This document shows, one piece after another, positions 1 through 43,920 of a DNA stretch of 64,000 bases. The position numbers were made by a program, and so were the translations under genes. Under the pieces are notes generated by a model that ran no database searches, had not been told where the DNA came from, and saw only the letters and a list, made by a program, of their open reading frames with translations. The stretch comes from Octopus bimaculoides. Lineage: Eukaryota. The stretch's first letter is position 1. Each line of letters begins with the position of its first letter. Location: positions 138,978,323 to 139,042,322 of the forward strand of contig NC_068981.1 in the NCBI RefSeq assembly GCF_001194135.2, read 5' to 3'.

Positions 1-367
1 CCCAATGTGCATTCCAGATTTGAAGAAAATTTGTCAAGAAGAATGGGAAAAATTCCCTAAAGAAACATGCGAGTCATTGATTAAGAACTACAAGAAGAGA
101 TTGGTTGAAGTGGAACTGAATAATGGTTATGCTACGAAGTATTAAATCAGAATTATCAGTTATTTATGTTCTGTATGAATACTTTTTCACCCCTAAATAT
201 TTATATTTGTATATGAATTCATTAGTTACTATAATTTATTAGTTTCTTTTGCATATTCTTAGTTTATGTATGTGTATGGAAATATAGTATTGGTATATCC
301 CATTTATGTTCATTAGAAATTAAATAAAGAATTTTGACAAGTACGAATATTTATTTCCCCCACTGTA
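1..367 (+). mobile_element. 3' end of a Tc1-family DNA transposon (transposase C-terminus plus right IR/DR terminal repeat)
   Basis: 2..145 reads PMCIPDLKKICQEEWEKFPKETCESLIKNYKKRLVEVELNNGYATKY*, the typical Tc1 EEW...KRL...G..TKY end. The element terminates in ...CCCCCACTG followed by TA (361-367). An inner direct-repeat-like copy lies at about 175-193. Confidence 0.85.
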
Positions 368-465
368 CATTCATAATTATATACTTCAAAATTAATTTTA
401 CCAGTATGATCATTTTTTATACGCTAGCCACTGATATAATTATATCCTCAATTTATAAGTGTGTG

Positions 466-499
<34 letters not shown>

Positions 500-654
500 T
501 ACATACGTATGTCGCTTTGTGTTTGTCACCCCACACACACACCACTTGACAACCAGGGTCAATTTGTTTGATTAAAAGCCTTCAAAGTAGTGCTCCAGCC
601 AGACTTCAGTCTAATGACTGAAACAAGTAAGATATGTGTGTGTGTGTGTGCGTA

Positions 655-1030
655 TCCTTTTATTTGTTTCAGCCATTTGACTGCGTCCATGCTAAAGCAC
701 CGCCTTTAGTCGAGCAAATCAGCCCCAGGACTTATTCTTTGTAAGCCTAATACTTCTTCTATCAGTCTCTTTTGCCAAACCACTAAGTTATGGGGATCTA
801 AACATACCAACATCACTAGTCAAGCGATGGTGGGGGACAAACACAGACACGCAAACATACACATACATAACAGGCTTCTTCCAGTTTACATCTACCAAAT
901 CCACTCACAAGACTTTGGTCGGCCTGAGGCTATAGTAGAAGACACTTGCCTGAGGTGCCATGCAGTGGGACTGAACCCGGAACCATGTGGTTGGTAATCA
1001 AGCTACTTACCACACAGCCTCTCCTGTGCA
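655..1030 (-). mobile_element. tRNA-derived SINE, family A (CORE-type centre), diverged copy; approximate ends
   Basis: Same head, CORE-like cttgggcaagtgtcttctactatagcc block and tail as the copy at 25222-25648. Confidence 0.8.
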
Positions 1031-1667
1031 TAAATATATATTATTAAGTACAGTTTTCATCAGAGTAGAGGATGACTTGGCATGCACCATTCTTTTACTT
1101 ATTATTTTAGGTCCCATGTAGTTTTTGTTCCAACAGAACAGCTAGGATGTGCCACCTGGCTTGGTTAAGAGAGATGGAGACAGAGAGAGATGAACCAGTA
1201 TTCAGCTAGTACTTTTGTTAACAAGACCAAAAACCTGAAAAGTGAAGTTGGCCTCAGCAAGATTTGAACTCAGACTTTAGAGAGCCAAAGCAAATATTAC
1301 CACAATAAGTTTATCCAATGCTCCAGTGACTCTGCCAACCAGCCATGTCTATATGTATATGTTACATTATGGGTGCACATCATAAAGATGCTAATAAAAA
1401 ACAAATAAAAAAAATTTGGAAAAAATATTTAATTTCATAGAAGTTATTTAATGGTGTGTTTTGAGTGAACAATTAGAAATTTTAAAAGTTTTCCAGAAAA
1501 AAATTTTTCCAAAAAAAAAAAAATCAAAGAAAAAAAACCTGATTTGCCCTTCTATACATTTTTTTTAAAATATATATTTTCATTTTCCAAAATGACAAAT
1601 AGTATTCTAAAGAAAATCTGCAGGTTATTGTATAAAGCCAACTTAAGATAAATGTGTAGAGGATTAA

Positions 1668-2094
1668 CCCATGAGCATTTAAACCAACCCTATCTGGCCC
1701 TAATATTTTACCTGTTTTATGTTCAAACTGGCCAGATCCAACCTCTCATACCTACCCAACAATGTCATTCTAAAAATAAACAATCACATCATTGAAATCC
1801 CAAAACTACAAGATAATAAATGATAAATTCAATATAATGTGAAGAAATATTACATTTGACAGAGTAATCTCAATGCCTAAGGTTTAAACCAGCCATATCC
1901 TGCTCAGATAATCTACCTGTTTTATGTTTTGAAAATCTGCCATATCCAGTCTCTCTCACCTACCCTCCAACAATGTCACTCTAAAGATATACAATCACGT
2001 CATTGAAATCTCAAAGCTACAAGATCATGCATGATTAATTCAAAATAATGTGAATAAATATTACATTTGACAGAATAATCTAAATGCTAAAGGG
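1668..2094. mobile_element. piggyBac-type MITE with an internal duplication
   Basis: TTAA|CCC...AGGG|TTAC ends; two diverged internal units of about 210 bp. Confidence 0.65.
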
Positions 2095-3283
2095 TTACAA
2101 TAAAAGAATTACAATTGCAGAAGCAGAAAATTCAAAAATTCAAAAATTCCGAAAAAAAAAAAAAAAAAAAAAAAAAATCATCAGAATCAATAAGAAATTC
2201 TTAATTTTACAACTTTGCTGAAAGAAGTGGAGATTTTTCAAATTTTTATTTTTAATGAAATTTTGCATTTATAGAATAGATTCTTTTCTTTTTTCATAAA
2301 CTAGAATCAAAAATAGATTTAGACATAGAATCGCAATACAGAGAATCAAAATTTATAATTAGAATAATTTTGGTTTTAATTAGTTCCCAATTTCTCAAAC
2401 ATTTACTAATGTTATACTGGAAACTTTTCTGTTTTTGAGTTTGTATTTCTCTTCATTCAGCCCCTATCCTTTTATCTCTTAGTGATTACAGCTAGTGGAT
2501 TGTAGCCATGCTGGAGCACTGCCTTAAAGAGTTCTAGCTAATGGTACATATTTTATCTCTTTAACCAAGACTAAGTTATGAGAACATAAACCAACACCAG
2601 TTGTCAAATGGTGACACACATACACACACACATATGACAGGCTTCCATACACTTTCCATCTACCTAATTCACTCACAAGATATTGGTTAGCTATTGTAAA
2701 AGACACTTGCCTAAGGTGCCACATGATGGGACTGAACCCAGAAACATATGGTTGCAAAGCAAAATTCTTATTCCCACAACAATGCTTGTATCTATATTCA
2801 CAAATTATGTTTATGTAAGATTTTAATTTTACTTGTTCACTCATCATCATTTAACATCCCTTTATCCCATGTTAGCATGTGTTGGACAGTTCGATAGGGA
2901 CCAACAAATCAAAGGCCTTGTGCCAAGCTTCAGTGTTTACTTTGCCATAATTTCTACGGCTGGATGTCCTTACTGCAAATATTTCAAATAAATAATTAAA
3001 AGAAATTTCAAACATAATTTCCATTCCAACCTACCTGTGTTAAATCAACAATACATTCACTCTCAACACCTTTTACTACCAATGTGCCAAGTTTTACAAA
3101 GCACATTTTCAGGTTTCATATCAGACATAAAAGAAAACAAGAATCAAGATCTTTTAAAGAATAAAGCAAACCAGACAAAGGTATGGCATGTCGTTTTTTT
3201 CTTAAAATATAAAAACAAGGAGTGGCTTAATGTTCCCAAATTAAGCCTTTTTCGAAAGGCTTAAGTTTTCTTTCTTTTTTTAA

Positions 3284-3650
3284 CCCTTTAGCATTGAATC
3301 CGGTCATATCCGGCCCAAATATTTTACCACTTTTATGTTACAATTGACCAGATACAATCTCTCACACCTACCCTACAATGTCATTCTAAAAATATACAGA
3401 AATACCATTCAAATTTTGAAACTCGCAAGATAATCCTTTCTACTTATAGGCACAAGGCCCAAAATTTTGGGGGAAGGAGTTGACTCAATTACATCGACCC
3501 CAGTGTTTAACTGGTACTTAATTTATCGACCCCAAAAGGATAAAAGGCAAAGTTGACCTCAGTGGAATTTGAACTCAGAAGGTAGCGATGGGCAAAACAT
3601 TGAGAACAAATAAGCAGAGTCTTTGACAAAGATATCTGAATGCTGAAAGG
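3284..3650. mobile_element. piggyBac-type MITE with a SINE family M copy inside (about 3438-3600, minus)
   Basis: TTAA at 3280-3283 and 3651-3654; TIR ccctttagcatt / aatgctgaaagg. Confidence 0.72.
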
Positions 3651-3717
3651 TTAAAAAGACATCAGCATTGTTGTGCTAGACTTAATCCACTGCCCAGTTT
3701 AACATCACCACATAGTG

Positions 3718-3898
3718 TATCAGGACAATTACCCTGACCCCAAGGACAATTCCCCCTGACAACAACTACCTCCTAGAACAATTACCCCCACCACCACCAC
3801 CACGTCCAATATATTAAGTTTTAAATCATCATCTGTTGTCCTCAGGGGTAATTGTCCTTGAGGGGTTATTGTCAATGGGGGGTAAATGTCCTAGACTC
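3718..3898. mobile_element. Small foldback MITE with repeated ggacaattaccc subterminal motifs in inverted orientation
   Basis: Three ggacaatt(a/c)ccc-like motifs on the left are mirrored by gggg(t)aattgtcc motifs on the right; TSD not resolved. Confidence 0.55.
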
Positions 3899-4199
3899 CA
3901 TAGTAGTAGGCTGCCTTTAATGGAATCCATTGGTGCAAGCATTCGGGCCATATCTCCAGTTTGAAAATACTTTCTTCTGATCACAGAGTCTCTGTAAAGA
4001 AGATTCATGGACATTACCATCCCCTTTTAAAAGGAAAAATCCTTTTGTCACATCATAGGATAATTGGTTGCATTTTCAGTCTTATAATTATTAAATGAAT
4101 TGGTACAGAACTCCAAGTCAACCTTTCAAACATAACCACCCAACCATCACGAGTGTATATTAATATAAACATTCAGAATGAATATTATATATATCTTTT

Positions 4200-4363
4200 T
4201 ACTTTTTACATGTTTCAGTCCTTAGATTGTAGCTATAATAATAATTTTTTTTTTAAGCCTATTTATTCTACTGGTCTCTTTTACTAAACCACCAAGTTAT
4301 GAGGATGTAAACACACCAACACCAATTGTCAAGCATTGGTGGGGGACAGATACACACACACAT

Positions 4364-4411
<48 letters not shown>

Positions 4412-4575
4412 CACATGACAGGCTTCTTTCAGTTTCCATCTACCAAATCCACTCACAACGTTTTGGTCAGACCAAGACAATAGTAAAAGATACTTGCTCA
4501 ACATGCTACACAATAGGACTGAACCCAGAACCATGTGGCTGAGGGATAAACTTCTTAACACACAGCCATGCCAGT
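4200..4575 (-). mobile_element. SINE family A, diverged copy with internal (TA)n; approximate ends
   Basis: Matches the family A head and tail. Confidence 0.75.
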
Positions 4576-4848
4576 ACTTCAATAAGTGGGTATGGTGTTA
4601 TTTGAGGAAGATTTGACTGTTATTTCTAACAGATCAACAACTTCTTAGAAGCTCTTTTATTCTTGGTTTCTATAAATATGTATGTATGTATATATATATA
4701 TATATACAATTTGAAAATCCTACACGACTAGGTGAAAAGCGCTTTATTTAATATGTGACATTAATAAAAATCTGTAAATGTACAAACATCCAGATTTCTG
4801 AGTACCTTAATTTTATCTATATAATTTCTGTACATCACCTCCAAACCT

Positions 4849-4879
<31 letters not shown>

Positions 4880-5673
4880 AGTACATAAGTTCTAAAAGGT
4901 GTCTTATCTTTCTATATATCTTAACATTCTATAGTTTGTTTTTTGTTTTGTTCTTTTCATAAATGAATTCTATTATTTCATTAAACCAGCGTTGCAGTGA
5001 AACAAATGGTCAAAGTTCGACAACTCCGTTAGATTTATTCTCTGTAAGAGTCTGTAATCCATAAAAGAAATGTAAATTTTTTTTTTTTTTACATGATTCT
5101 ATTTCACTATTTTAATCCCGTTTTCATAATTAACATGGGTGGCGTGGTTATTTGACGTTTTCCCCTAGTTAACTTTACAACTAATGACACTAAAAGCATG
5201 AATGGTTGAATGTGACTAATAAATAACCAGAGTAGTCAGAGTTATATACCTTACAACAGTTCGTTTTCATTAACGTAACATAGATGGCTCTATCAGATAA
5301 GTTAAATCCGTTAAGCTAAAAAAAAAAGAGGTGCAAAATAATAATCATTGATTCAGGATTTAACTGAGAACTGATCAAGCAAGCTAAGATTTCTCTAAAT
5401 AGAAAAAAACAAAAATGGAACTTTTCACATAGACCTATTCGTCATCTTGTGGTTTTTTTGTTTATTCCGTAAAAGTTAGTGAAAGTATTGTGTTACTGGA
5501 AGCCTTAAAAACAGGCTATGGTTCAGATATTGATTGACTGAAATAAAACCAACCGGCTAAAAGCAAAATAAGTTCATACGAAATAGGTACATTTTTCTTT
5601 TTTTATCCCTAAGTTTTCTGTAGATAAGTTCATTATTCAAACGATTCATAAACTTGTGCCAATAATACATAAT

Positions 5674-5875
5674 TTTTGCCACAAGGGCAGCTTAGGGGAG
5701 GTGGGGATAAGTTGATTACATTAACCCCACTGTTCAACTGGTACTTATTTTATTGAGCCCAAAAGGATGAAAGGCAAAGTCGACCTTGGCAGTATTTGAA
5801 CTTCCAAATGTAGCGACGGGCGAAATACCACAAAGCATTTCGTCCAGTATGCTAACGATTCTGCCAGCTCACCGC
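5674..5875 (-). mobile_element. tRNA-derived SINE, family M, with a 21-bp target-site duplication
   Basis: Reverse complement starts ggcggtgagctggcagaatcgttagc (A-box-like) and carries the gtcgactttgcctttcatcctt central block. TSD cttgtgc(c/t)aataatacataat at 5653-5673 and 5876-5896. Confidence 0.85.
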
Positions 5876-6912
5876 CTTGTGCTAATAATACATAATAAAA
5901 AGGAAAGTATCCCCTAAATTAGAAAAATAAATTACAGCTTTATCAAAAAGCAAAAGAAATAGTATTTCAGAATTAAGTCAGAAATATTTTGTGTATAAAA
6001 CAAAAAAAGAAAACCTGTTTATGATCACTCCTTTTTAACTGTATTTTTCTCACAAGAAACCCTTTTTTTTTTTTATTTAAAAAAATTTTCAAAAATTAAA
6101 ATAAGAAGATTACTAATGACAATTACAAAGTTTTATAAATGTATATTATATGTATATAATCCAAGCAAAATAGTTTCTCTTTTTTGTACAAGATGCTTTT
6201 GTTTACTAAAATGTCAAATTAACAAGTGAAAAAAACTGATTCAGTAGGTGAGGAAAAAAAAGAAAAAACTTCATTTTAACAAGCATTTTAAACTGATAAA
6301 TAATAGTGAAAAGGAATGAGACGGGTGCAGCATCCCTTACGTCACCCAATCGCAGAAAACTTCCAAAAATAGTGATAATGATTCCTTTGAAGTAGTCAGT
6401 CAAAAAGTGAGAATAGCAAATGCAAAGGAGAAAGAAAAAAGAAAAGTAAAAAAGAAAAAAAAAATAGATATAAGATAAACGTGTATTCATTCGTGCGTAT
6501 CTGTTTTGTGTTTAAGAGATCATATATGCTTGTATAAGCGCCAAAACAATGAAAACAGATCACCCTATCATAAGCAAAAGATTTCAAGTTAATTCACCAC
6601 AAAAGGTCTAAGGCTTTTTAATCATTCTCTGTATTAGCCTAAGACCTTTTGGTTACCTTATGAACAGCCACTCAATTTTGCATAGTTCAACTTGGCAATA
6701 TTCACACACATGTATGCAAAAGTTCAAACTTATAATCAACAAATCCACTGATGCATTACATGTGGAACTTTCAGCAACTGGTTAATACTTAAAGAACAAT
6801 TGGCTTCTTTTTTTTTTTCGTCATTCTGTTTGCAGGGCCTAATTTGATGGATAAATCTTTTTTTTTTTTTTCTTAATAAGAAAGAATAAAATTTGTTTAT
6901 GTAAATTAGTCA

Positions 6913-7168
6913 TTAGGATTGCTTTGTATGTTTTTGTGCCGTAATCCAGATTTCATCATCTGGTTTAGTAACCAGTCCATAAACAGGAGTGACAACCTGA
7001 CCTTTAACAAGACCCAAGCGGAACATTCTCAAAATCTTTGTGATACAAATGCTGGCACATAAATAAAGTAGTGCACGCTTTGGATCTCCGTTTTTGCCAT
7101 AAATATCAAAAGGTTGGAAAACTAAACCAGATTTGGCCTTATCCTCAGCAAATCTTTCTGGATCAAAC
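6913..7168 (-). CDS. CYP20A1: CYP20 exon 11, terminal coding exon (FDPERF...[19 protein letters not shown]...[13 protein letters not shown])
   Basis: 256 nt; TCAG acceptor; TAA at 6915-6913; PERF motif present; heme loop has no Cys. Confidence 0.92.
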
Positions 7169-7610
7169 CTGAAACAAAAATAAAAATTATAAAGTTAGAA
7201 TCCTTATATACTGTATATGTTCACCATTCTTAACAATATCAATGAAGAGAATATTGTCTGCCATCATTGTTTTAATCTCCACTTTTCTATGCAACCATAG
7301 GTAAGATGGAATTTATTGGGGCAAATTTTCTACAGCTGGATACCCTTCCTGTTGCCAACTCTCACCTGCTTCCAAGCAAAGTGATATTTCCCAACAGCTA
7401 GACATGTTTTTGACAGAAGACAAGAAACAAACAACATTGCTTGTACGACAATGATGTTCATTTCAACCATCATGTGATATCTAGACAAGGGTACACACAA
7501 ACACACACATACATATATATATATATAGATATATATACACACACACACACATATATATACACACATATACATACACACATATATATTTACATACATATAT
7601 ACATATACAC

Positions 7611-7671
<61 letters not shown>

Positions 7672-10600
7672 TGATGAGCTTCTTTCAGTTTCCATCTACC
7701 AAATCCACTCATAAGGTTTTCGTCGGTCTAGGTTTATAACAGAAGACACTGGCCCAAAGAACCATGCAGTGGGACTGAATCCAAATTTCCAAGGTTGGGA
7801 AGCAGGCCTCTTTAACCACACAGCCAATGCCAGCACCTTCATACGTAAATAAAAACTATCATGATGAGATCTATCACAAAGCTAATCAATTCAGTGACCA
7901 TCAAGACCTGCAGCTTTTCAACCTGAGATCCACAAGACTTGTACTGGAGTCTGTGAACCATGCTCAAAACTTTAAAAGGCTGCAGTGTAAAATGCGTGAT
8001 TATTCATTTATATATTTTATTATTACTGAATCACACATCATTACCACTCAGTTGCACTTTATTATTCTCTACATCATTTAATGTCTGTTTTCCATGCTGG
8101 CATGGTTTTACAGGAGCTGACAAGGCCAGAGTCTGCACCAGGTTCCATAATTTGTTTTGGCTTCATTTCTATAGGTGAATGCCCTAATGCCAACCACTCT
8201 ACAGAGTGTACTGAGTACTTTTTATGTCACATCATCATACAACGCTTTTTATATGGCATTACACCCACACCAATGTTTTTTTTTTATGTGGCACCTTGGT
8301 TTCAGGGTATCAATTCTGTTGTGGTGGGTGGGCTTTGAGTACAGCAATATGCCACTTATCTAAATCTTACACAATCAGTTACAGATTACTATTATTCAAT
8401 TACATATATCTTTTTCAACCAAGATGAAATTGGTGGCAAACTTCTTAACCATATATCTATGACAGTAACCTTGTTTTATAAGAATTTAACCCCCAAAATT
8501 CTATAATCATCATCATCATCATCATCATCGTTTAACGTCCGCTTTCCATGCTAACATGGGTTGGACGATTTGACTGAGGACTGGTGAACCAGGTGGCTAC
8601 ACCAGGCTCCAATCTGATTTGGCAAAGTTTCTACAGCTGGATGCCCTTCCTAACGCCAACCATTCCGAAAGCGTAGTGGGTGCTTTTATGTGCCACTGGC
8701 ACGAAGGCCAGTCAGGAGGTACTGGCAACGGCCATGCTCAAAATGGTGTATTTTACGTGCTACCGGCACAGGATGTAAAGGTTTAACCAGGCCTTGTCAC
8801 ACATTTGTATGTTTCTATGCTGTTCTATGAACTTGGACACCATCATTACAGAACATTGCAGCAATTGACTTATTAGATACTAATAATGCTAACTAAAAAC
8901 ACAAAAATTTAAACATACTGAGTAGGAAGAGGCCAATATTGTTCTTCTTGCATTAGGACACCGATAGCATGAAGGATAGGAGTCTGAAGAAAGAAAATAA
9001 ATAAATAAATAAATAAATAAAGTGATCTGTACTAAAACATTTAATGAAAGCAGAACAACAATTTAAAGTGATATTCTTGTGTATGCTTTAAAAGACAATT
9101 AAAACATGGAGCTATGAACAGATAACAGTTTATAAAATAGCTACACATTTATTTCAACAAGGTAAAAGAGTTTTCCAAAAATAAATATTCATCATAATCA
9201 TCATCATTTAACATCTATTTTCCATACTGTTGTGAGTTGGGTGGTTTCCAGTCAAAAGACTACCCCAAGCTCTGTTTTGGGCTTCAGTATGGGTTCTACA
9301 GCTGGATGCCCTTCCTAATGCCAACCACTTTACAAAATGTACTGGGTGATTTTTACATGACACCAGCAGCAGTGAGGTCACCAAGTAACTTGCAGGACAA
9401 GACCCCTCAACTAAAGTGGGAAGTGGGAGTAGTACTGAGGGGCAGAAACTGTTGTCTTGAAGTAGAAGAGAAACATGGCTATCTCAGGTGGAGAAAAAGT
9501 GGAAAGAGAGAAGGACAGAGAGAGAGAGAGATGGTGAGGATGTGGTGGGGAAGGGGTGCATACACCCAAGTTACAGGGATGTGTATCATGTGAAGTGGAC
9601 AGGGGATAGAAAAGAGTAAGTAGGTGGCTAAGTTCACGAGATTGAGGAAAAAGAATGAGAGATGGGAGGAGGAAGGAATGTTACTATAATATATACTAGC
9701 TAGCTCCATGCCGTCAAAAATGATAGCTAATTGTAGTATTTTATATATAAGGTACATAATAATCACACATACAAACATTCACATATTTTCTTAGTACATG
9801 CACAAACATACTCACACAGAGTTGAAATGCTGTTTGATATATTTTTTCACCCCTTCCTTTGTCATTCATATGTTGTGACAGAGAAAGACAAGAGTATTAT
9901 TATAGTAGATTGTTCCTTAGAACTGACTGGTCTCATTCCTTCTCCAGGGGAGCACCACCAATCCTCTTGGCTCTCCACAACTCATTATCCCATCCCCAAA
10001 CTTAAATAACCATATGCCCAGTCCTCGCTCCCTAGAATACCAGCTCCCTCTGGAATCTTCTACTTGCTCATATCATTCCTTTTGGTTGATGACCCGAAGC
10101 AATTTTAAAAAAATATTAATGGCATCAAGCTCGCCAGTCCCAGGACCTACAAAAGCCCTTTCCTTTATACTCAACCAGTAAAATAAAAAGAAAAACCACA
10201 TTAATCCTAAAACCCTGCAAAAATAAACAACCCCTTCCTCTAGGTGCAATTGTAAATGAACCCATGAATGCAATTGCAGCTATTTTTTTTATATAGATGT
10301 TCATACAGATCCATTGAAAGAGATAAGAACACAGACCTTCAGTTACAAATATCTATTATCATCATTAAAGCCTGAGAACAAGATTTTAAAATTCTAACTT
10401 AAAAATTGAATGTTAGTTGAAATAAATATAACATTTTAGGAAGTTAAAAAATAAATTAAATTAAAGATAAATTTGTAAAATAAATATATTACATTTTTGG
10501 GAATTTTATGTCCTTCAAGTTCTCCATCAAAACTCTGGGTGTAAGCAGACCATTGTATTAACACAGCACATCGATGAGTTTCATCCAACACTTGCTTCAG

Positions 10601-13600
10601 ATATCTGAGTAAAGAAGAAACAGATGGAAACAGAGAATTTATTCCATTGTTTTGCAGACATATTTCTAACAAGAATATAATATAATAGCCTTTGTGTTTT
10701 AATTTGCAAAATGGATAGGATGGGTCATCACAATCTGTATCGTCTTGCACACACAACAACACAGAAGACCATCTGATTTGGGTGTAGTGTAACTTGTAGG
10801 TGCAAGCAACAGGTACATGGTAACTTTAAGGTACATGGTAACTTTAAGGTACATGGTAACTTTAAGGTACATGGTAACTTTAAGGTACATGGTAACTTTT
10901 AGGTACATGGTCTAGTGGTTGCACTCATGATTGCAAAATTGAAGTTTCAATTCTTGGGCCAGGTGATATATTGTACTTTTGAGCAAAACACATCATTTCA
11001 CATTGCTCCAATCCACTCAAGCTGTAAATGAGTAACTTTGTAACAAACTGGCATCCTGTTCTAGAGGATTGTTGTGATCTCAGTCACTTGTATGCCATAG
11101 AAACTATGTGACCAGCCTTATGTGTCCTAGAACTTGAGACACTAATGTCCAAGGGTTGATGTTGACAAAGAAACTTCTTAATCAGACTGCCATGCCTGTG
11201 CTACAAATTTAATGGATCCCATTATCGATTAGAATAACTTCTCTGGCACTGCCAATCAACAATCTACTGCCTTCTCTTCAAAATTCTCAATGAAGAACCT
11301 CTACGCAGTATAAAGTTCAGAACTAGAACATCCTCATCAGTATTTTAATGTCCACTTTTCCATGCTTGCGTGAGTCAGATGGTATTTGTTGAGGCAGATT
11401 TTCTACAGCTGGATACACTTCCTTTCATTAGCCTTCACCTGTTTCCATGCAAAGTCAATATTTCCCCATAACCAGACATGTTTCAATACATCATCATCAT
11501 CATTTAACGTTCGCTTTCCATGCTGGCATGGGTTGGACGGTTTGACAGGACTGGCAAGCCAGAAGGCTGCACCACGCTCCAACCTGATCTAGCAAAGTTT
11601 CTACAGCTGGATGCCCTTCTTAATGCCAACCACTTTGAGAGTGTAGTGGGTGTTTTTTACATGCTGAAATGGTGTTTTTTACAAGCCACTGGCACAGGAG
11701 CCAGTCAGACAGCACTGGCAACGACCACATTCGTATGATGCATTTTACATGTTACCAGCACGGGAGCCAGTCTGGTGGGACTGGCATCGACCACGCTTTT
11801 TACTTGCCACTGGCACGGGTGCCAGTCAGGCGGTAGTGACATTGGCCACAACAATGATTTCACTTGACTCAACAGGTTTTCTCAAGCACAGTTTATTGCT
11901 CAATGATTGAAGGGTACTCTTAAATGAGCCAGTTATACTACACTGGCATAGGCCATGGTTACAGTCTCACTTGGCTTGCTGGGTCTTCTCAAGCAACACA
12001 AGATTAGAAACAAAGACACTGCTTGCATAATGGCAATGCTTGTTTACAACTATCATGTGATGTCAGGACAAAAGTACACAAAAACACACACATCACCACA
12101 AACTCATACACACATATGCAGGTCATCATCGACTTATGACTGCTCAACTTTACAATGATTGGTGCACCAGCTCCCTGAAGCAATACTAAATAGTCCAGCT
12201 AAAATCTAATGGATTTAATTTCTTAGAAATTAACCCGTCTACAGATGATGTTAGGTAACAAACGCTTCTCCTAGGTTTGGTTATCAATCGCCAGTATGTT
12301 GGATGACTATCCCGTCGTGGAGACATCGAGGCAACCTCATATTTGTTTATAAGGCGACTGCTTGAGACTCCAAAATTTTTGACTAATGCCGGCATAATAG
12401 TATAATACAGAATGCTGTGTGTGACTTTTACCTGAGAATGTACCTTAAGAATGTAAAAATATAAAACAAAGCTATGTAGGCCTATAAGCTGACTTACGAC
12501 CAGTCAGTCGGAACCAATTGTAGTCCTAAGTTGATGACAACCTGTATATATAATGGGTTTCTTTCAGTTCCTCTACCAAATCAACCTACAAGGTTTTAAT
12601 CAATTTGACGTTACAGAAGACACTTACCCAAGATGCCAAGCAAGTGGAATCAGATATATAAAGTTTGAGAGGGAATATAGATGAAAAAAAAAAAACAGAA
12701 AACTGCATTCCTTACTTCAATTTTTTAAGATTCTCTGGAGTAATTTCATCATCTTTCAGAGTTTGTACTTCTTTTGTAAGTTTGGTTTGTACATCACTAT
12801 GAGTAGCAAGGAAATATAACAACCAAGTCAACACTGAAACAAAAGTTTGAGAAGCATTAAAGCAAAAGAAATGTTTAGAGACAAAGAAGCTAAGTTAAAG
12901 GGAGACGAAACTGGGGTTTAAGAATAGACCTATATTATCTAATATTTTCTTCCTTTTTTTTTTACAGAGACAGAAAAGTGTGACTTGATGCAGATTTGGA
13001 AACAAGTCTAACAGATCAAGCAACAATGCAGAGGTTCTCTACTGCCAGATGTGGTTGTAGTGAAAGTATGACACCTGGATTAAGATTAAGGAGATCGTTG
13101 CCAGTGCCGATGGACTGGCTCCTGTGCAGGTGACACGTAAAATACACCATTTCGAGCATGGCCGTGGATTGTTACCAACGTTGCCTTCCTGGCACTTGTG
13201 CCAGTGGCACGTGAAAAAACATTCGAGCGAGATCGTTGCCAGTGCCAATGGACTGACTCCTGTGCAGGTGACACGTAATACACTATTTCGAGAGTGGCCT
13301 TTGCCAGTAAGACATCCAAGCGAGATCGTTGCCAGTGCCCCTGGACTGGCCCTTGTGCAGGTGGCACGTAAAATACACCATTTCGAGTGTGGCCGTTGCC
13401 AGTACCCGCCTGACTGGCCCTCGTGCCGGTGGCACGTAAAGCACCCACTACACTCTCAGAGTAGTTGGCGTTAGGAAGGGCATCCAGCTGTAGAAACTCT
13501 GCCAAATCAGATTGGAGCCTGGTGTCGCCTCCTGATCCACCAGTCCTCAGTCAAATCGTCCAACCCATGCTAGCATGGAAAGCGGACGTTAAACGACGAT

Positions 13601-16600
13601 GAATCATTACATTTTTGTTTGCAATGAATTTCAATCTCTTGATAAATTTGTGACTGTGAAACAGATATTTAAAAAGAATGTGATGCTGCATAATACTGGA
13701 GCATAAGCATAGAATGTGGAAGGTAGCAGAGGCTGGCGAAAAACAGAATATAGTCTATTGGACATGCAACATTAATTTACATGAAAACATCCAAAACAAC
13801 CAGAATGTAAAGGCATAAAGATGATGTGTGCAGAAATATAGAAATATATACTTCTTATATATTCTCTATGATTAAATTAATCCTTTTGACAAAGTTTCGC
13901 GTAGTTTATTTTATTCAATCCAATGTTAATAAATGTTACCTTTACTGATAGTACTAATTGACAGGAAACTTGTAAGTTATTTGCAGAGCTAGACTTAAGA
14001 TAGAGTAATTAGGTGAGTCATGGGGAAAAAAGATGTTCTTATAGAAGAGATCACAATGGAACAAGTTGTAGAGAATAATGCAGTTTAATGCAGCCCCTGG
14101 CAAGATGTTGCACTAAAAGCCAAAAAAACGATGATGTTGCACTGTAAGCTAACCAAACCTGCAGAGAGATGCTGCACCACAAATTCATGGAGGACTGCTA
14201 CACTACAAAGCCATGGAGAGATGCTACCACTACAGATCCATGGAGAGCTGCTACCACTACAGATCCATGGAGAGCTGCTACCACTACAGATCCATGGAGN
14301 NNNNNNNNNCATGGAGAGCTGCTACCACTACAGATCCATGGAGAGCTGCTACCACTACAGATCCATGGAGAGATGCTACCACTACAGATCCATGGAGAGC
14401 TGCTACCACGACAGATCCATGGAGAGATGCTACCACTACAGATCCATGGAGAGATGCTACCACTACTGATCCATGGAGAGATGCCACCACTACAGATCCA
14501 TGGAGAGATGCCACCACTACAGATCCATGGAGAGCTGCTACCACTACAGATCCATGGACAGCTGCTACCACTACAGATCCATGGAGAGCTGCTACCACTA
14601 GAGATCCATGGAGAGATGCTACCACTACAGATCCATGGAGAGATGCTACCACTACAGATCCATGGAGTGATGCTACCACTACAGATCCATGGAGATATGC
14701 TACCCCTACAGATCCATGGAGAGCTGCTACTACTAGAAATCCATGGCCGGATGCTATGCAACAAACTTATAGAGAGACTAAAGCAGGTCTCTCAACCTCA
14801 TTGTAAGAGTACACAACAGACCACAACAAGCAATGCCAGTATTAATATAGTGGTAGGGTGTGGCACAAGGAGAGCAATAAAGTTTTGAAAACTGAAATAA
14901 AACAAAGAACGGTAAAAGATGTTAAATGAGACATTACAGCAGCCAAGAGTATGAAAATCAAACATCATTGTCATGAAGAGGTCCATAACTATTTCACTAT
15001 CAGCTGCATCAGTCTTCAACAAGAAATCAATTAGCAAGGAATTCTCTGGAGAAACAGTTGGCTGGTCACGCCGCTTTGTAACAGCATCTTGCAGATATTT
15101 CTCAAGAAAATTCTGAGCTGCAAACAAAAAAAAAGTAAAAAATATATAAGTAAATAAATACATAAAACTGGTTAAAATGAAAAATTATGCTTTATTAAAA
15201 GAAAAAAAAATCAGATTTTAACAAAATATTTCTCGTGATTAGCTTTTTTTAGAAATAAGACAAAATGTTCAGAGGCAAGGTGGCTGAGTTCCTTTCAAGC
15301 AGGCCTTACAGAGGTGAGGTGGCTAAGTTCCTTTCGAGTGTTGGGCCTCATGGAGGCAATGACCAAGACCTTTGGCATTATGTCATGCTTGAGAAGAAGT
15401 CCCATCAAACCGTGCAAAATTGCAGTTGTGGCAGATACCAGTGTTGCGCAAATGGCACCCTTTCTGGTGGCACACAAAAGCACGCATGACACTCTCAGAG
15501 TGGTTGGCATTAGGAAGGGCATCCAGTCGTAGAAAACCATGCCAAAATCAGACTGGAGCTTGGCACAGCCTTCCCATGTGCCAGCCCAGTCAAACAGTCC
15601 AACCCATGCCAGCGTGGAAAACAGATGTTAAATGATCATGATCATGATCATCATTCCTAAATATAACAATAACAAAATGAAATGGACATTATCTATTATC
15701 ATTCACAATTCGGGGGAAAAAGGCAGACAGCTAGCCCATTAATTTTGCAACAGACGCTAAAAGTACTAAAGAAAAGGAAAGCAGCCATGACTAATGGGTC
15801 ACTGCAGTAGTGAGTACAACATCCTCATCAGTTAACATCCACCTTTTTGTGTTTGCATAGCCAGATTCATTTCTTATTGCCAACCATCACCTGTTTCCAA
15901 GCAGGGGAGTATTTATCATAGCCAGATGTGTTTTTCACAGGAGTCTGGAAACAAACAGCGTCACTTGTATGATGGTGATGCTCATTTGCAACCGTTATGT
16001 GATGTCAAGATAAGAGTACACACATATATGAACACACACACACACACACACACATTTTAACATATGTGAACACATACAATGGGCTTCTCTCAGTCTCCAT
16101 CTACCAAATCCTTTCACAAGGCTTCGGCTGATCTAAGGCTATAATAAAAGACACTTGTCCAAGGTGCCATGCAGTGGGACTGAACCCAAAACCATATGGT
16201 TAGGAAACAAACCTCTTACCCACACAGCCACATATGATGTACCTAATTCTACTCAACCCACAACCACATGATTCTGAATCGAATTTCTTCACAAGACAGC
16301 CACACCCATATTCAAACAACAACAAAGCAAAAAAGCAAAAAAACATGGTAAATGTGGAAAATATTTTCATACCTTCTTTAAAAGCTTGTATCCGATGAGA
16401 CTCCGGTTCAGCCAGATCCTGCAGGCATCTCTGGATTTCATACCAACACTGGACAAATGGAAAGAAATATAAAACAACTTAAACACAAGTGTCTGCTATA
16501 TACACAGTTCAAGATTTTGAATATCTGTGAACAAAGGATATAGATATATATGTAATATGTGAACTAAGAGTGTATATAGATTTCAGTACATACAAAATAT

Positions 16601-19600
16601 ATCATCATCATTTAGCATCTGTTGTCCATGCTAGCATGGGTTGGACGGTTTGGTAAGCTGGGAGGTTACACCAGACTCCAGTCTGATTTGACATGGTTTC
16701 TACAGCTGGATGCCCTTCCTAATGCATTTACATGTCACCAGCACAGGTGCCAGTTGCGTGACACAAGTATTTGCCACAACTATGATTTTACTTGACTTAA
16801 TGGGTCTTCTCAACCACAGCATATTGCCAAAGGTCTCGGTCATTTGTTATTGCCACCATGAGGCCCAACACTCGAAAGGTGCTTTTTACATACCATATAT
16901 ATATACATATATCATCATCATCATCGTTTAACGTCCGCTTTCCATGCTAGCATGGGTTGGACGATTTGACTGAGGACTGGTGAAACCGGATGGCAACACC
17001 AGGCTCCAATCTAATTTGGCAGAGTTTCTACAGCTGGATGCCCTTCCTAACGCCAACCACTCAGAGAGTGTAGTGGGTGCTTTTACGTGTCACCCGCACG
17101 AAAACGGCCACGCTCGAAATGGTGTCTTTTATGTGCCACCCGNNNNNNNNNNNNNNNNNNNNNNNNNNNNNNNNNNNNNNNNNNNNNNNNNNNNNNNNNN
17201 NNNNNNNNNNNNNNNNNNNNNNNNNNNNNNNNNNNNNNNNNNNNNNNNNNNNNNNNNNNNNNNNNNNNNNNNNNNNNNNNNNTCTCACTCGAAAATCCTA
17301 CGGGAGCCAGTCAGGCGGTACTGGCAACGGCCATGCTCAAAATGGTGCATCTCATGTGCCACCCGCACAAGAGCCAGTCCAGGGGCACTGGCAACGATCT
17401 TACTTGGCTTGCCGGGTCTTCTCACGCACAGCACATTTCCAAAGGTCTCAGTCAGTAGTCATCGCCTCGGTGAGGCCCAATGTACGAAGGTCTTGCCTCA
17501 CCACCTCAGCCCAGGTCTTCCTGGGCCTACCTCTTCCACGGGTTCCCTCAACTGTTAGGGTGTGGCACTTTTTCACGCAGCTATCCTCATCCATTCTCAC
17601 CACATGTCCATACCAGCGCAATCGTCTCTCTTGCACACCACAACTGATGGTGTGCAAGAGAGACGATTGATATATATATATATATATAAAACAGATCAAC
17701 ATCAGTAATTAATTTTGAAGACTTACACTTATTCTGTTGGGTACTTTTGCCAAACTGCTATGTTGTGAGGACATAAACAAACTAATACTGGTTGTTAAGC
17801 AATGGTGTGGAGAGAAAAAGGATACTCATAAATATATATATATAGACACGCACACACACACACAAACATACATATACAAACACATACAAATACACACACA
17901 TGTACAAACACACATGCACGCACAAGTGATAAACATCTACACAGTTTCTGTCTACCAAAGTCACTCACAAGGCATTAGTCAACCCAGAGATATGGAAGAC
18001 ACTTGCCCAAGGTACCACATGGTGCGGCTGACCATGAAACCTTGTGGTTGCAAAGTGAGTCTCAACCACATGGCCATACCTGCACCCATACATGTGAACA
18101 CTGAACATGTACGTTATATGAAATAAGTATACACATTTTAGTATGTTGAATATATATGAGGACAATAGTGAAGGTGTGTAGGCAAGTGGTTACGATGTTA
18201 GGCACCTAATCCTAACACCATACACTCAATTCCTGGGCTGGGCAGCACATTCCATCCTTGAGCAAGGCACTTCATTTCACATTGTTCCAGTTTACTCAGT
18301 TGAAATAAGTAACAGCCCAGTGTTGAATCAGACCCTGACTCCTCTCTCCCTCTCTCCCCAACTGTTACATCCTGGATGTTTCAGCTGAGTCAAAGATGGG
18401 AAAGACCAAGAGGATATTGACAGTCATCTAAAATAACCATCGAAAGGCTAATACAGATACATGCTAACATGTAGTTCTACTATTACATATATGGTTATAT
18501 ACCATCATTATGGCAATCTAATGTAATACAAGAGAAATTCAGAATCTGGCAGGAGAAAACATTTCAAGTAATATATAGACAACAACAAATAAGAAAGAGA
18601 GCCAACAGAATCATTAGCATGCCAGGCAAAATGCTTAATAGCATTTCATCCATCTTTGTGTTCCAAGTTCAAATTCTGCAGAGGTCGCCTTTGCCTTTCA
18701 TCCTTTCAGGATTTATAAAATAAGTACCTGCAATTGATTTACCACCCCACTCAAATTGCTGGCCTTGTGATAAAATTTGAAACCAATATATAGACAAGAA
18801 ATACAATACTAGGGCAGGTAAGGACATACAAACAGAAATGGTAGATAAGCATTCTTGAATGTACAGAGCAGATATGTGCATGCACCGTGTAGCTAGACTA
18901 TGAGGCATTATCACTTACCGTATCAAAATTCCTCCGCAATGTGAAAATCCCCATGTTGTCTTTGAAGGTGTCACCAATTGTGCTAAGGACTTGATATTTA
19001 ATTGCTAAAGCCATCATGTGCTCCTCTGCAGGAATATGTTGATCGCTCATCACTGACCATTTTGTCAGTAATTCATCAGTAATCTAAGAAAAGAAACAGT
19101 TTAGATTGGATAATTCAACATTCATTTGCTTTCATCAAGAAAGATTGTACAACTCAGAGAGAAATGACAAGAAAATGAAATAAAAGTTCACTGATGAATA
19201 AGATAACTTCTTGAAAAATAAGATAATGGGCTTTATTTTACATGTGGAGAAGACCAATTTTTATAAGTTTGCTCTGGCACCACAACACTACAATCTTTAT
19301 CTTCTTCCTAGCTATTCCTACCCACTCTTATATAATATGAGGTAGCCATGTATCTCTTCTATAGCAAGACACCTGTGCTTGTTCCTCTATCATACTTAAA
19401 CCTCTCAATACCTGGCACAAAGCCACTCTCAAATACTACCCCCTGCTTGTCGAAGAAGCTTTTTCTGGATCTTTTCCATCTTGCAAGTTACTTAGCAACT
19501 ACATTAGTGCCAGTGGCATGAAAAAAGCACCCAGCACACACTATAAAGTTGTTGGTAGTAGGAAGAGCCAAATCTAACATTGGAGTTTAACGAATCCTCT

Positions 19601-22600
19601 CAAACCATCCAACCCATGACAACACAGAAAACAGATGTTAAACAATGATAATGATGGTGATGAGAAGAACAGTTAAGTGAACTTTAATTCTAGTATCAAA
19701 ATGTAATTTACTTCTTGGACTCAAGAAAAATAAATGGTAAAGTTAGCTCTGGTAAGATTTGAAACTGTAACAGAAAAGGATCTAACTAAATGCATTTCGT
19801 CAAACACTCCATGTCAGCCATCCTGGTTATTTTGTATTGTAAATGGTGAAGTGGACATCAGAAATTACATGTTTCCAATGAGTCGATTACTGGTTCACTG
19901 CATTTCTGGCAAGAGCAACAAGGGAGTGCCTGTATCTTGGTGTAGAACACACATCACAAGAACTTCATTCAAGAAGTACTGGTTGACCAGTTTTCTCGAA
20001 GTTTACATTCTTTGTTAATAGAGGTACATCATGTCCCTCAGTAACAACAGTACTAGAAAGAACAGCGTCTGGAAGGGCATCCAGCTATAAAACACGACTA
20101 CAATGTCTCTCCCAACCCATGCCTGCATGGAAAAACAAATATGAAAACAATGGTTATACAACGTATTCATACACATGGGCACAATAGCCTTCTAGTTTTT
20201 CTCTACCAAATTCCATTCACAAGAAAAGCGGTGAACGTTTCAAGGGAGGTAACTCACATCAAACTTAGAGCAAGGCCATTTAAAATAAAACGGAAACGGG
20301 TTTTATAATTACTACTGTTATATCAAAGACTGGGTTTCAGAGTGAACTTATGCCAAGCTGAAATATGTTCCAAAGCTGTTATAAGCCATCCAACTATCAC
20401 ATTTCCTATCCCCATATAAATAGCAACCTTGTCGTCTAAGGAAGAAATATCTATTCATATAATCAGAGAACAAGCACTGTAGATGTAAATTTAATTTCTA
20501 GTGAGTGAGTTGGCAGAGTCATCAGAGCAACAGATGAGATGCCTAATAGAATTTCTTCCAGCTTCTTACTTTCTGAGTTCAAACCCTGCTAAGCTCAACT
20601 TTACTTTTTATTCTTCTATGGTCAATATATAAAAGTGCTGGTCTAAGGCAGTGCACTGGCAGAAATGTCAGAACAATGGACAAGATGCTTTGCCATATTT
20701 GTTCCAGCTCTTTGCATTCTGAGCTCAAATTCCTCTTATGCCTACCCACATAGTAAACTTAAATTTGTCACCCATTCTAACACCATCACCTGGTCTTTGT
20801 TTTTTACTCAATTGCAAGCGGTCAGGTCAAGTGTCCAGTTTGAGAGTAACTTCCTCACACACACACCCCTACTGCCCCATTTCAGAAGCCCTGTAAAATA
20901 TTGAAAAAAAAAAAAAAAGTTTGGATAATGATTGAAACAAAGTTACAAAACCTTAATATATCATCTGCTTCTTCTTCTTCCAGTCAACTCTGCACTAACC
21001 ACTTTGTTCTTTCCAGAATGTTAGCCCTTCAAAATTCCCTTCATACTCATGGCTTTCTTCTGCAGCAATCAACTTGCAAGCATTCGTAAATTTCAACAGC
21101 ATCAAGATTTCATCAGTCTCAACAAGGCTATGAAATGTATGAGCAAGCCACTCCCTTCCTCCAGACACAATAATTTTTCTTGCACTTTCACTTGTTTCAG
21201 TCATCTGACTGTAGCCATGCTGGAGCACTGCCTTATAAAGGGCTTTAGTCAAAGAAATCGACCCCCAAGACTTATTCTTTATAAGCTTAGTACTTCTTCT
21301 ATTGAACTCTTTTGCCAAACTGCTAAGCTATGGGGACATAAACACACCAGGGCGATCTTTCGATACCAGTCCGAAATATCGGCCTTTTCCGTAACACCCG
21401 CACGATCTTCACTAGGGTGTTAGGGTTAGGGTTTTAGAGTTAGGTTAGGGTTAGGGTTAAGAGAGATAGAGAGGGAGAGAGAGAGGGAAGGTATGTTTTT
21501 TTTGTTTTTGCTTGTTGTTTGCTGTTTACCACAGCCACTGTGGTAAGTAGCATGCCAACTTCAAAAGAAATTGCGCTCTCTCTATCTCTTTCGAGTCCTT
21601 TCCCACTTCCCTAACCCAACACTTTTTACGGAAAATGCCAAAGTGATGTAAATAAACACACGTGGTCTAAATGACATTTTTCGGACTACTACCAAAGGAT
21701 CACCACACACCAGCATCAGTTGTCAAGTGATAATGAACAAATTTATTAGAGAAAAAGTTATAGAAAGTTTTCTGATAAGTGGGAGATAAACAGGAGCAAA
21801 ATTGTGATCTATTGTATAGTATAATGAAAATAATTCAAGTAAGAATTGGTTGACTCAGTATGAAGTGGGTATAAAAATGCATGATTGAGAGTTTCAGGTT
21901 ATGAAAATTCATTTCAAATGACTTAAGAACATGAAATACCTTTGCTATAATGGTGGAATGGATTTTGATAGAATTTTCATTCAAAGACTTTGTATACTTA
22001 ATTCTGCGTTGCTTTCCTGATTCATCACCGTTAAAAAGGCTTTCTGATCCCAAAAGTGGTTCAAACAGCAAGTAGACTTCACCTAAAATGTTTGAAAAAA
22101 ATTATAATAGAAATATTGAGCAAACAACAATAACACAAACTACCACAAGCAGAAATAGAAAATAAGTGAAATTTAAAAAAATAAAATGGTTGGTAAATAT
22201 TTAATAATAAATACTTCAGAATTTTAAATTCAGATATATGTGGATTATTTCACTATTACATTAAAATTCCAAGTTCAAAGTCTACTGTGAACAGGTATCA
22301 TGGAACCCCGAGGTTTAGAAAAGGACTGNNNNNNNNNNNNNNNNNNNNNNNNNNNNNNNNNNNNNNNNNNNNNNNNNNNNNNNNNNNNNNNNNNNNNNNN
22401 NNNNNNNNNNNNNNNNNNNNNNNNNNNNNNNNNNNNNNNNNNNNNNNNNNNNNNNNNNNCAGCTGTATGAAAATTTCCTGACACCCCACCCCACCCCTTG
22501 TCAGAAAACAGCTTCAACAGTTGTGAAGAACGAATTTGTACGTAGTCTGTTTCTGAGAGCTATTCTATTGGACCTCTGTCTAATCATTGAAACATTGATT

Positions 22601-25388
22601 TAATTATGAACATAGAAAGAAATTATACATTAATCCCTATTTTTGTAAGCAGTTGTATCTGTAAAAATTTTATTTGCAGAGAGCAAAAATTGAAAGAAGA
22701 TATATGAAATGGACGTGTGTGTATGTGCGTGTGTGTGCGCACATGCACACTTGCGTGGGTGTATGCTTATGATAGCTGATTTATGGAAAAGATTATTAAA
22801 TTTTTGAAATGCAAATATGTAAATGACAATTAAGTTCAGATCTCTACATAGTAGCTAGACCTGGTAGAAATAGCAGCCAAATCTCCCTCAAAACACCCTA
22901 CTGTCTTAATCTGACAATTCTGCCTATTATGTAGTTTGAATGAGAAACTGTAACTAAAGATTAAGATTATTAACTCCACAAAGAGGTGAAAGAGAGATAG
23001 CATAGCGAAAGTTTTGGCTGACTGTCATCCTGTATTCCCCATGTTGCTAGCGAAATGGTATATGCTGGCTGTGAGCAACTGGTTGTTTTAATGGCGGAAG
23101 AAACAGGAGAATTCCATTAGAAAAAGTGTTAATCAATTTTCTCGGTAAGTATGGGGGCTAGGAAAAAAATACAAACCGCATTCCAATCTATGCACCCGTC
23201 TCCACATGTGTGCCATTTTTCACGCGAATCCACCCAGCCATTTGGCTGTGAACCTCAAGACAAGAAAGAATACAACGATCACCCATGTCCAATTTATATT
23301 ATAGATTTAGAATTTTCCTCATCAATAAGGGTTAAACAATTCTTACTTGATCGGTCAACAATTTTCTTCTGGTTCTTGAAAAGTTCTGGAGATGCCAGAC
23401 TGATAATTTGATAATTTGACATCCAAAAAGAAGTGATAGAACCATACTGCTTATGTATATTGATCAGAAATTCATGAAGACTTCCAGAGCGAATAATGTC
23501 AGCCAAATTTCCATCTCTGTAAAATAAGAGGGTTTAGTCATTTACATTATTAAAACATCATTAATTTTTTTAAAGTTCAAATCGGAAGAGAAAAATAGAA
23601 AAGACATGACATATTATGGATATTATGTCAAGAAATAGGAAACGACTACATCATTTTTCTTCACATCAATAAAACCTAAAAACTAAATTCTGTATGAATT
23701 AAAATCTGGCATACTAGATTTTTATTCAGCCAGGTGGCTATTCACAATATTAGCATTTTATTCATCTTTCTCTATATCAAAGACAAAGATTTCTCATTCA
23801 AGCATGTTAGGGAATAGAGATATAAAGTTGTTGAATTATGATCGTCAAAAGAAAAAATGTCTACTATCATTTTATCAATTATATTTTGTTCTTTTAGTAG
23901 TTACAGTTTCTCTTTATTAAAAGATATGTCCATAAGAGATGTTACTGCAATAACTGACCTCTCAACAGTGTATATACCTTAGGTATGATACATAGATAGC
24001 TATTTTACATTCTGTAAATCACTTCGTTCACATGCCTCATATAAATTTCATTTGGAAAAAAATCCCTTTTCTACTCAATGCAAGTAGCACCTCTTCAAGT
24101 GGTTTAACTAACACAATTAAGCCACTGAAGTAGCATCTCTATAAACAATGAAACAACTTACAAATAAGTAGCAGAATTCCATACAAACCTCTACAATCTT
24201 TCTTTTCAAGGTCATATTTTAATTTAGATACACCATTTGTTACAAATTATTTCATAAATAAACAAGTATTTGGTAAAATATCTTTTTTACCTCTGCCTTA
24301 GTGAAGGCACAGGTGTTGTTTGCAGTCATGTTTGTTTCTTTGTTTGTCCGTGGACAAGATATCTCAAGAACTGCTGGATGGATTCAGATGAAACTTTCAG
24401 GGATGTTTGGCCTCGTGACTGGCACAAACTGATTAGATTTTAGGATTGATCTGGTACTGGATAAAGATTCTGGATTATTTTCCCTTTTTTACTTAATTTT
24501 TGAGAGCAGTCCAGTTCAATTTTAGTATTCTCATTTGTGAGAGCAGTCGAGTTTATTTCAGATATTCTCATTTTAAAAATCATCTCTGGCTAATCGTTGA
24601 GAGGACGTTAGTGTTGCCTTGGCAGAGGTCTGTGCTCTCTGAGCACTCTTGTTATTATTAAACCAGTGTTTGGAACATGAAGTAAGAGTGAACTGCTTAA
24701 GCAAGATACCTACAAAAGAGCTAACACAAAGAATGTTATAAATTCTAAGCCTTATGATACTATTTGTTCTTTTACATGTTTTTCCATATTTCCATGGATT
24801 GGACCAGAGGTTCTCAACCATTTTATATCTATGGACCCTTTTGATTACTAGTTTATTCAGGTGGACCCCCACAGCCATTCTATATTAAAAAAACAAGTTT
24901 TATAGAAACTTCTTTCAAAATTCCTATTTTGTTTTTCACACATTAACTTATCTAAGTTGAACTATGTAAAACGTTAGAGAAAAAAACCTAGCTATTTCTT
25001 GCAAATCATACCAATATATGCATCTAAAACAACATCTTTTCAGAGGCCCTTAAAATTCTATTGTGGATTCCCAATTTACTATTTTGCTGTATGGACCCCC
25101 AAAAATCTTACATGGACCTTCAGGGGCCATATGGACCCCAGTTGAGAACCAGTGGGTTAGACAGATACTTATTGAAGTATCTTATTTTTGCCTTTAGATA
25201 CAGGGCTAAAGTAAATTTTCACAGGAGTGGCTGTGTGGTAAGTAGCTTGCTTACCAACCACATGGTTGCGGGTTCATTCCCACTGCGTGGCACCTTGGGC
25301 AAGTGTTTTCTACTATAACCTCGGGCCGACCAAAGCCTTGTGAGTGGATTTGGTAGACGGAAACTGAAAGGAGCCCGTCGTATATATG

Positions 25389-35340: not shown

Positions 35341-35674
35341 AAAATATCTAAATATTTCTTTTCAAAATACNNNNNNNNNNNNNNNNNNNNNNNNNNNNNN
35401 NNNNNNNNNNNNNNNNNNNNNNNNNNNNNNNNNNNNNNNNNNNNNNNNNNNNNNNNNNNNNNNNNNNNNNNNNNNNNNNNNNNNNNNNNNNNNNNNNNNN
35501 NNNNNNNNNNNNNNNNNNNNNNNNNNNNNNNNNNNNNNNNNNNNNNNNNNNNNNNNNNNNNNNNNNNNNNNNNNNNNNNNNNNNNNNNNNNNNNNNNNNN
35601 NNNNNNNNNNNNNNNNNNNNNNNNNNNNNNNNNNNNNNNNNNNNNNNNNNNNNNNNNNNNNNNNGCAGAAACAA

Positions 35675-43856: not shown

Positions 43857-43920
<64 letters not shown>

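Follow-up and report, generated by a model that had tools for sequence, protein, structure and literature searches.

Coleoid cephalopods carry a member of the cytochrome P450 family CYP20 in which the heme-thiolate cysteine has given way to aspartate (in octopods) or arginine (in decapodiforms), and the reading that I favor, at a probability of roughly 0.6, is that these proteins have lost thiolate ligation, probably the heme along with it, and would have been kept for a non-catalytic role as P450-fold proteins. The gene examined here lies on the minus strand at 34723-6913 (start to stop codon) of a 64,000-nucleotide stretch of Octopus bimaculoides DNA, hereafter the window, and is intact, with 11 exons, a coding sequence of 1407 nt and a protein of 468 aa. 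RefSeq already lists the gene: its entry XP_014772315.1 ('cytochrome P450 20A1 [Octopus bimaculoides]') matches the translation at every residue.

Membership of the CYP20 family is supported from several directions. A query with the full-length protein retrieved 74 homologues, the named ones nearly all CYP20A or CYP20A1, from molluscs, annelids, nemerteans, a brachiopod, echinoderms, a sponge, ticks and vertebrates, with no non-CYP20 P450 family among the top matches; a query with the last exon alone retrieved just two fragments, and the homologue set rests on the full-length query. Bivalve, gastropod and annelid CYP20A share 43-45% identity with the octopus protein, and vertebrate sequences 32-36% (coverage 94-100%); by the convention of P450 nomenclature, a family takes in proteins with about 40% identity or more to its members. 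PF00067, the domain of the P450 superfamily, is recorded on all the homologues, the O. vulgaris and Argonauta proteins and the O. bimaculoides cluster among them, and the protein search found one CYP20 cluster per cephalopod lineage, in keeping with a single-copy family. In a neighbor-joining tree the coleoid sequences are monophyletic, with a position among the molluscs that is distorted by their long branch. The octopus protein has the same N-terminus (MLDFxIFA) as CYP20A1, equal length and many blocks in common with it; however, the 64 non-cephalopod proteins keep an FGFAGKRxCPG or (in vertebrates) GFSGxxECPE pocket, an arginine at the R346 column (wherever they have a residue there) and mostly a G/A-G/A-x-x-T I-helix, whereas the coleoid proteins have none of these. 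That the window holds a functional O. bimaculoides orthologue of CYP20A1 is the best explanation, and forms part of the reading weighted above. The literature refers to CYP20A1 itself as 'the last human orphan P450'; it has no known physiological substrate and is expressed in brain, and its loss leads to behavioral phenotypes in zebrafish (PMC8669017).

The cysteine position and the surrounding heme site

MAFFT was used to align 69 CYP20 proteins, of which 64 are non-cephalopod, three octopod (from O. bimaculoides, O. vulgaris and Argonauta hians) and two decapodiform. The heme-thiolate column holds cysteine in all 64 non-cephalopod rows, from sponge to vertebrates, aspartate in every octopod row and arginine in both decapodiform rows; the CYP20 of O. 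sinensis also has aspartate there. This invariance confirms the proposal of the initial annotation, made from the DNA letters, that Asp412 (codon GAT, read 7086-7084 on the minus strand) fills the cysteine position, and the human CYP20A1 motif that was cited in its support agrees with the vertebrate sequences retrieved (LGFSGSQECPELRFAY). The same annotation called for an alignment of orthologues, and this places the loss in all coleoids sampled, with aspartate in octopods and arginine in Sepia and a second decapodiform. Elsewhere the pocket reads FGFAGKRxCPG, or GFSGxQECPE in vertebrates; the octopus protein, with Asp412, departs from the general P450 pattern FxxGxRxCxG, and its degenerate pocket (residues 404-414, positions 7078-7110, minus strand) differs from the orthologues by G405D, F406I, R410N and C412D. 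Around residue 412 each lineage has its own conserved loop, KNGDPKR in Octopus and Argonauta and DKRTRLA in both decapodiforms.

The decapodiform sequences come from transcripts. One (P0005) is a Logan contig assembled from Sepia esculenta RNA-seq reads (run SRR20545806), and its cluster includes 'CYP20A [Acanthosepion (Sepia) pharaonis]'; the other (P0006) represents a second decapodiform cluster, 88.5% identical to the first and drawn from two other RNA runs. Since these contigs are 1.7-kb transcripts with complete open reading frames and no introns, and one member of the Sepia cluster is found on 101 contigs, decapodiform CYP20 is evidently expressed. The transcript evidence is from decapodiforms only, the sequence collection searched having returned no octopod CYP20 transcript contigs. 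An exhaustive HMMER search added about 60 further CYP20-like cluster representatives, of which nearly all full-length ones have the cysteine. Four CYP20-like entries known from single Logan or JGI contigs (P0102, P0104, P0147 and P0151) lack cysteine at the aligned column, with asparagine there in P0104 and deletions in P0102 and P0151; they may represent either additional independent losses or assemblies of low quality.

Furthermore, the cysteine is not the only position to have changed. In non-cephalopod CYP20 proteins 79 columns reach at least 90% conservation, and coleoids keep 64 of these; P97, P342, R346, V365, G405, C412 and R464 are altered in all five coleoid sequences, and within this set of seven R346, G405 and C412 are 100% conserved elsewhere (for R346, arginine in 62 of the 64 non-cephalopod proteins and a gap in the other two). 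Residue equivalences were taken from a profile alignment with CYP3A4, which pairs R346 with R375 and C412 with C442. In CYP3A4, R375 and R440 (the equivalents of R346 and R410) hydrogen-bond the heme propionates. Position 346 is tyrosine in octopods (codon TAC, 10541-10543, minus strand, in the window) and threonine in decapodiforms, while R410, two residues before the cysteine position, is asparagine in octopods and kept in decapodiforms. The I-helix sequence (G/A)(G/A)FHT(T/S)G, which is GGFHTT in most other invertebrate CYP20, has become FDFHTLG in five of five coleoids (residues 278-284, positions 14942-14962, minus strand), so that the oxygen-activation motif (A/G)Gx(D/E)T(T/S) is gone from all of them; under strict criteria the protein holds six fixed coleoid-specific substitutions, and G278F, G279D and T283L make up three of the six. 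The loss that the initial annotation described for the octopus is real, but it was understated there, being neither specific to the octopus nor confined to the cysteine, with R346 and the I-helix also changed.

Other landmarks have stayed in place. The K-helix ExxR (ETHR, residues 333-336) and the PERF motif (DPERF, residues 386-390) are present, with E333, R336 and R389 invariant in the alignment, and the C-helix arginine pair is kept in all coleoids. Across the five coleoid sequences, the proximal region has no new conserved cysteine, histidine, methionine or tyrosine that might act as a substitute ligand, and Cys421 and Cys425, dismissed from the outset as unlikely substitutes, are indeed not conserved, being tyrosine and histidine or phenylalanine in decapodiforms. 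Unique substitutions are about twice as numerous in the coleoid lineage as in other molluscs (97 against 40 in Tajima's relative-rate test with an annelid outgroup, p = 1e-6), and the test is significant (p < 0.05) in 20 of 20 comparisons.

Octopods and decapodiforms separated some 250-300 million years ago. Judged from the distribution of residues, the cysteine was probably lost before that split, on the coleoid stem: I-helix changes that are common to all and frozen, alongside lineage-specific residues at 346, 405 and 412, are the pattern to expect from a single abandonment of heme ligation followed by drift at the ligand positions. Octopods and decapodiforms may instead have lost the cysteine twice, independently. 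A search of the representative library returned no Nautilus or other intermediate sequence, all coleoids falling there into one cluster.

Purifying selection and the question of a second copy

It is reasonable to ask whether an aspartate in this place is simply an artefact, arising from a mistake in sequencing or assembly at codon 412, or else the mark of a recently inactivated pseudogene. The assembly is gapped (2317 N in the window), which would favor such an explanation, but three independent octopod assemblies (O. bimaculoides, O. vulgaris and Argonauta hians) all read GAT at codon 412, two decapodiform transcript assemblies read CGT, and decay is at odds with reading frames that are intact in all octopod and decapodiform sequences, with intact splice sites and with dN/dS of 0.07-0.10 over dS of 0.8-1.0; artefact and decay together deserve practically no credence. 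The recurrence of the same GAT in the O. vulgaris and Argonauta hians assemblies also bears out the earlier judgment that a single sequencing error was unlikely.

The dN/dS values are pairwise Nei-Gojobori estimates, with coding sequences taken from the genomic loci of the octopods and the transcripts of the decapodiforms. They come to 0.073 for O. bimaculoides against Argonauta (dN 0.060, dS 0.82), 0.079 for O. vulgaris against Argonauta, 0.101 for O. bimaculoides against O. vulgaris and 0.070 for Sepia against the second decapodiform (dS 1.01), and the last exon alone gives 0.067-0.091 in two deep pairs. CYP20 is under strong purifying selection after the loss of the cysteine in both coleoid lineages, and the original impression that the gene was not decaying holds within octopods and within decapodiforms alike, with ratios far below 1.

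Another possibility is that coleoids still possess a canonical, cysteine-bearing CYP20, supplied by a paralogue that annotation has missed, by an alternative last exon beyond the window or by recoding, and that the copy in the window is a diverged duplicate. Incomplete genome annotations, the nine assembly gaps in the window and an annotated O. vulgaris isoform with an alternative C-terminus (P0077) leave some room for this. However, there is a single CYP20 cluster per cephalopod lineage in a search that reached orthologues at 31-45% identity in more than 50 other animals; the O. vulgaris isoform also has the aspartate and stops before the L-helix; and the assembly gaps overlap no exon. The initial annotation had named two finds that would speak for such a spare copy, and neither turned up. 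A cysteine-retaining cephalopod paralogue, or any second cephalopod CYP20, was absent from the protein search, which extended to orthologues at about 31% identity, and tblastn with 12 orthologue C-termini, together with a six-frame regular-expression scan for the motif, found no cysteine-pocket-like exon on either strand of the 64-kb window besides the last exon itself (7170-6931). Recoding fares no better, as the codon table upholds the earlier point that A-to-I editing cannot restore the cysteine: GAT can only become GGT, CGT is unaffected, and neither ever yields a cysteine codon. I regard a surviving canonical copy as very unlikely.

Sequencing error, pseudogene status and RNA editing to cysteine were thus each considered as explanations and ruled out, by the independent GAT and CGT codons, by dN/dS and by the codon table, respectively.

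Predicted fold, cofactor and precedents

Now considering what such a protein may look like, an AlphaFold2 model was built from a 46-sequence alignment for the O. vulgaris protein, which shares 98.7% identity with that of the window. Its mean pLDDT is 87 and its pTM 0.87; outside the linker that follows the membrane anchor, confidence is among the lowest over residues 391-410 (block means 68 and 55), in the loop that runs up to what was the cysteine pocket. Foldseek aligns the model to CYP3A4, CYP3A7, BM3 and CYP51 with TM scores of 0.74-0.79, and the P450 fold is accordingly predicted to be retained. A sequence search of the PDB returned no CYP20-named chain; CYP3A4 and P450 BM3 are the closest solved structures (profile E = 3e-50 for CYP3A4), although they share only 17-19% identity with the octopus protein and are both canonical heme-thiolate enzymes. 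The claim that selection keeps the fold and not thiolate catalysis, already put forward in the initial annotation, gains support from the shared loss of the cysteine, from the dN/dS of 0.07-0.10 and from this predicted fold.

The sequence of events that I favor would begin on the coleoid stem, where the changes would have arisen before octopods and decapodiforms diverged. Thiolate-dependent P450 chemistry would have been abandoned, and the heme, to judge from the residues replaced around it, is most likely no longer held. The protein would then have been kept as an ER-anchored P450-fold pseudo-enzyme that acts by binding. It might take up a lipophilic ligand in the cavity where the active site used to be, or it might dock with another protein, in analogy to the heme-less P450 homologues by which bacteria activate glycosyltransferases. 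Some observations count against a heme-less protein. The C-helix arginine pair in all coleoids and R410 in decapodiforms leave part of the propionate cradle standing, and bulky I-helix residues over the heme are known from true heme P450s, such as the tryptophan in prostacyclin synthase and in the Ser-ligated P450-G9 (PMC11703216).

The main alternative is a non-canonical P450 that still binds heme, with the Asp412 carboxylate as ligand in octopods and an arginine-lined pocket or a water or hydroxide ligand in decapodiforms, and with altered, non-monooxygenase chemistry, for example that of an isomerase, a peroxidase-like enzyme or a sensor. The retained fold, ExxR, PERF and C-helix arginine pair would suit such a protein, as would the conservation of the 412 loop within each coleoid lineage, and bacteria have families whose axial residue is glutamate or arginine, besides a native member with a serine ligand that binds heme (PMC11703216). 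However, the ligand position differs between the lineages (aspartate or arginine), so no common ligand is conserved; Arg346 is lost in all coleoids, and R410 as well in octopods; G405 of the cysteine pocket is lost; and heme binding by the bacterial Glu and Arg families has not been demonstrated (PMC11703216). I consider a heme-binding coleoid CYP20 possible, if unlikely.

Precedents for the favored pseudo-enzyme are to be found in bacteria. EryCII and DesVIII, of the PDGAF group, are heme-less P450 homologues that serve as protein activators of partner glycosyltransferases (PMC3391682; PMC11703216), and they are the sole characterized precedent for a P450 fold that selection has kept with neither cysteine nor heme. 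They act as non-catalytic partners or chaperones, and they preserve helices I, J, K and L, with mobility at the former heme site (PMC3391682; PMC11703216). The octopus protein resembles them in lacking the cysteine ligand; it is, however, a full-length, membrane-anchored animal CYP20, and the likeness is one of analogous mechanism, not of membership. A preprint by Nguy et al. (2024) describes 20 non-canonical P450 families (ncCYP subfamilies A-T), all of them bacterial, the largest two of which have glutamate and arginine at the axial position; heme binding is established only for a Ser member, and a Sec family has been proposed and is under characterization (PMC11703216). The Glu and Arg families parallel the aspartate of octopods and the arginine of decapodiforms, but the coleoid loss lies inside a single-copy and otherwise strictly cysteine-bearing animal family. 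The literature search found no paper joining CYP20 with cephalopods, nor one noting a cysteine-less CYP20 or a cysteine-less animal P450. Thus, while cysteine-less P450 homologues are known in bacteria, one inside a conserved animal family is new as far as could be found, and coleoid CYP20 would be, within the reach of that search, the first clade-wide cysteine-less member of such a family.

With Cys and Arg346 lost and dN/dS at about 0.07, coleoids provide a natural experiment in which a heme-independent function of CYP20 becomes directly testable. A broader proposal is that the role of CYP20 across animals is independent of heme-thiolate catalysis, consisting of ligand binding or scaffolding at the ER membrane, and that coleoids dropped a cofactor which was already unneeded; I hold this to be doubtful, but if true it would account for the two decades over which human and zebrafish CYP20A1 have defied de-orphanization. 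For those compiling inventories of cephalopod CYP genes, a PF00067 match should not automatically be counted as a monooxygenase.

Gene model and surroundings

The exons were first located by tblastn with a human CYP20A1 sequence, which was used as a probe only, and their splice borders were refined afterwards. All exon borders in the O. bimaculoides model are AG/GT, every intron being GT...AG, and the 11 exon lengths and the AG/GT borders are equal in the genomic loci of O. vulgaris (OX597814.1) and Argonauta (BAAFZT010000006.1). On the minus strand of the window, exon 1 (34652-34723) holds the start codon and the N-terminal membrane anchor (MLDFVIFAV..., predicted helix 2-22), and is followed by exon 2 (25727-25776), which was recognized by comparison with the O. 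vulgaris protein and is missed by a scan for the 'IPG' motif, the octopod exon having ILG. Next come exon 3 (23347-23516), exon 4 (21940-22082), which covers the C-helix region with its RR pair, exon 5 (18919-19083), exon 6 (16373-16448), exon 7 (14938-15117), where the I-helix motif lies, exon 8 (12716-12833), exon 9 (10493-10604), which carries the ExxR at 10582-10571 and the Tyr346 codon, and exon 10 (8919-8983). The last exon, 11 (6913-7168), is preceded immediately by the acceptor tttgtttcag and contains PERF (7164-7150), the degenerate cysteine pocket, the L-helix and the stop codon TAA (6915-6913). Every detail that had been read from the sequence at the outset (11 exons, canonical splice sites, 468 aa, codon coordinates, and the anchor, ExxR and PERF motifs) proved correct against this rebuilt model and its RefSeq identity.

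The O. vulgaris isoform mentioned above (P0077, CAI9716097.1) has 426 aa. It retains Asp412, diverges after ...DPKRALNY, at a point that corresponds to about position 7066 of the window and lies inside the last exon, and ends in HLYDVHL, without the L-helix and the C-terminal sheet.

The nine assembly gaps (14300-14309, 17143-17282, 22329-22459, 26867-26876, 33803-34421, 35371-35664, 37161-37664, 41771-42063 and 57783-58098) include five that fall in CYP20 introns. A scan for open reading frames of at least 110 aa found no long non-repeat frame in 1-6900 or 35000-64000. Intron 7 holds a 27-bp minisatellite (14164-14746, about 16 copies, 93% matches, also scored with periods of 54 and 81) that is broken by the 10-N gap at 14300-14309 and yields long spurious open reading frames on both strands, and intron 1 a 20-bp tandem repeat (27450-27623, 8.7 copies, consensus CACTCCTCGCGTGGGACAGG). 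A long TA/CA-rich, microsatellite-like stretch that also gives open reading frames occupies 7330-7700 in intron 10, just upstream of the last exon, and similar stretches occur at about 17800-18000, 28000 and 43800-44150. Finally, an interspersed repeat, recognizable by recurring pseudo-peptides on both strands and found in and outside the CYP20 introns (13086-13505, 16980-17558, 49790-50170, 9237-9593, 61982-62449 and others), is probably a SINE-like element.
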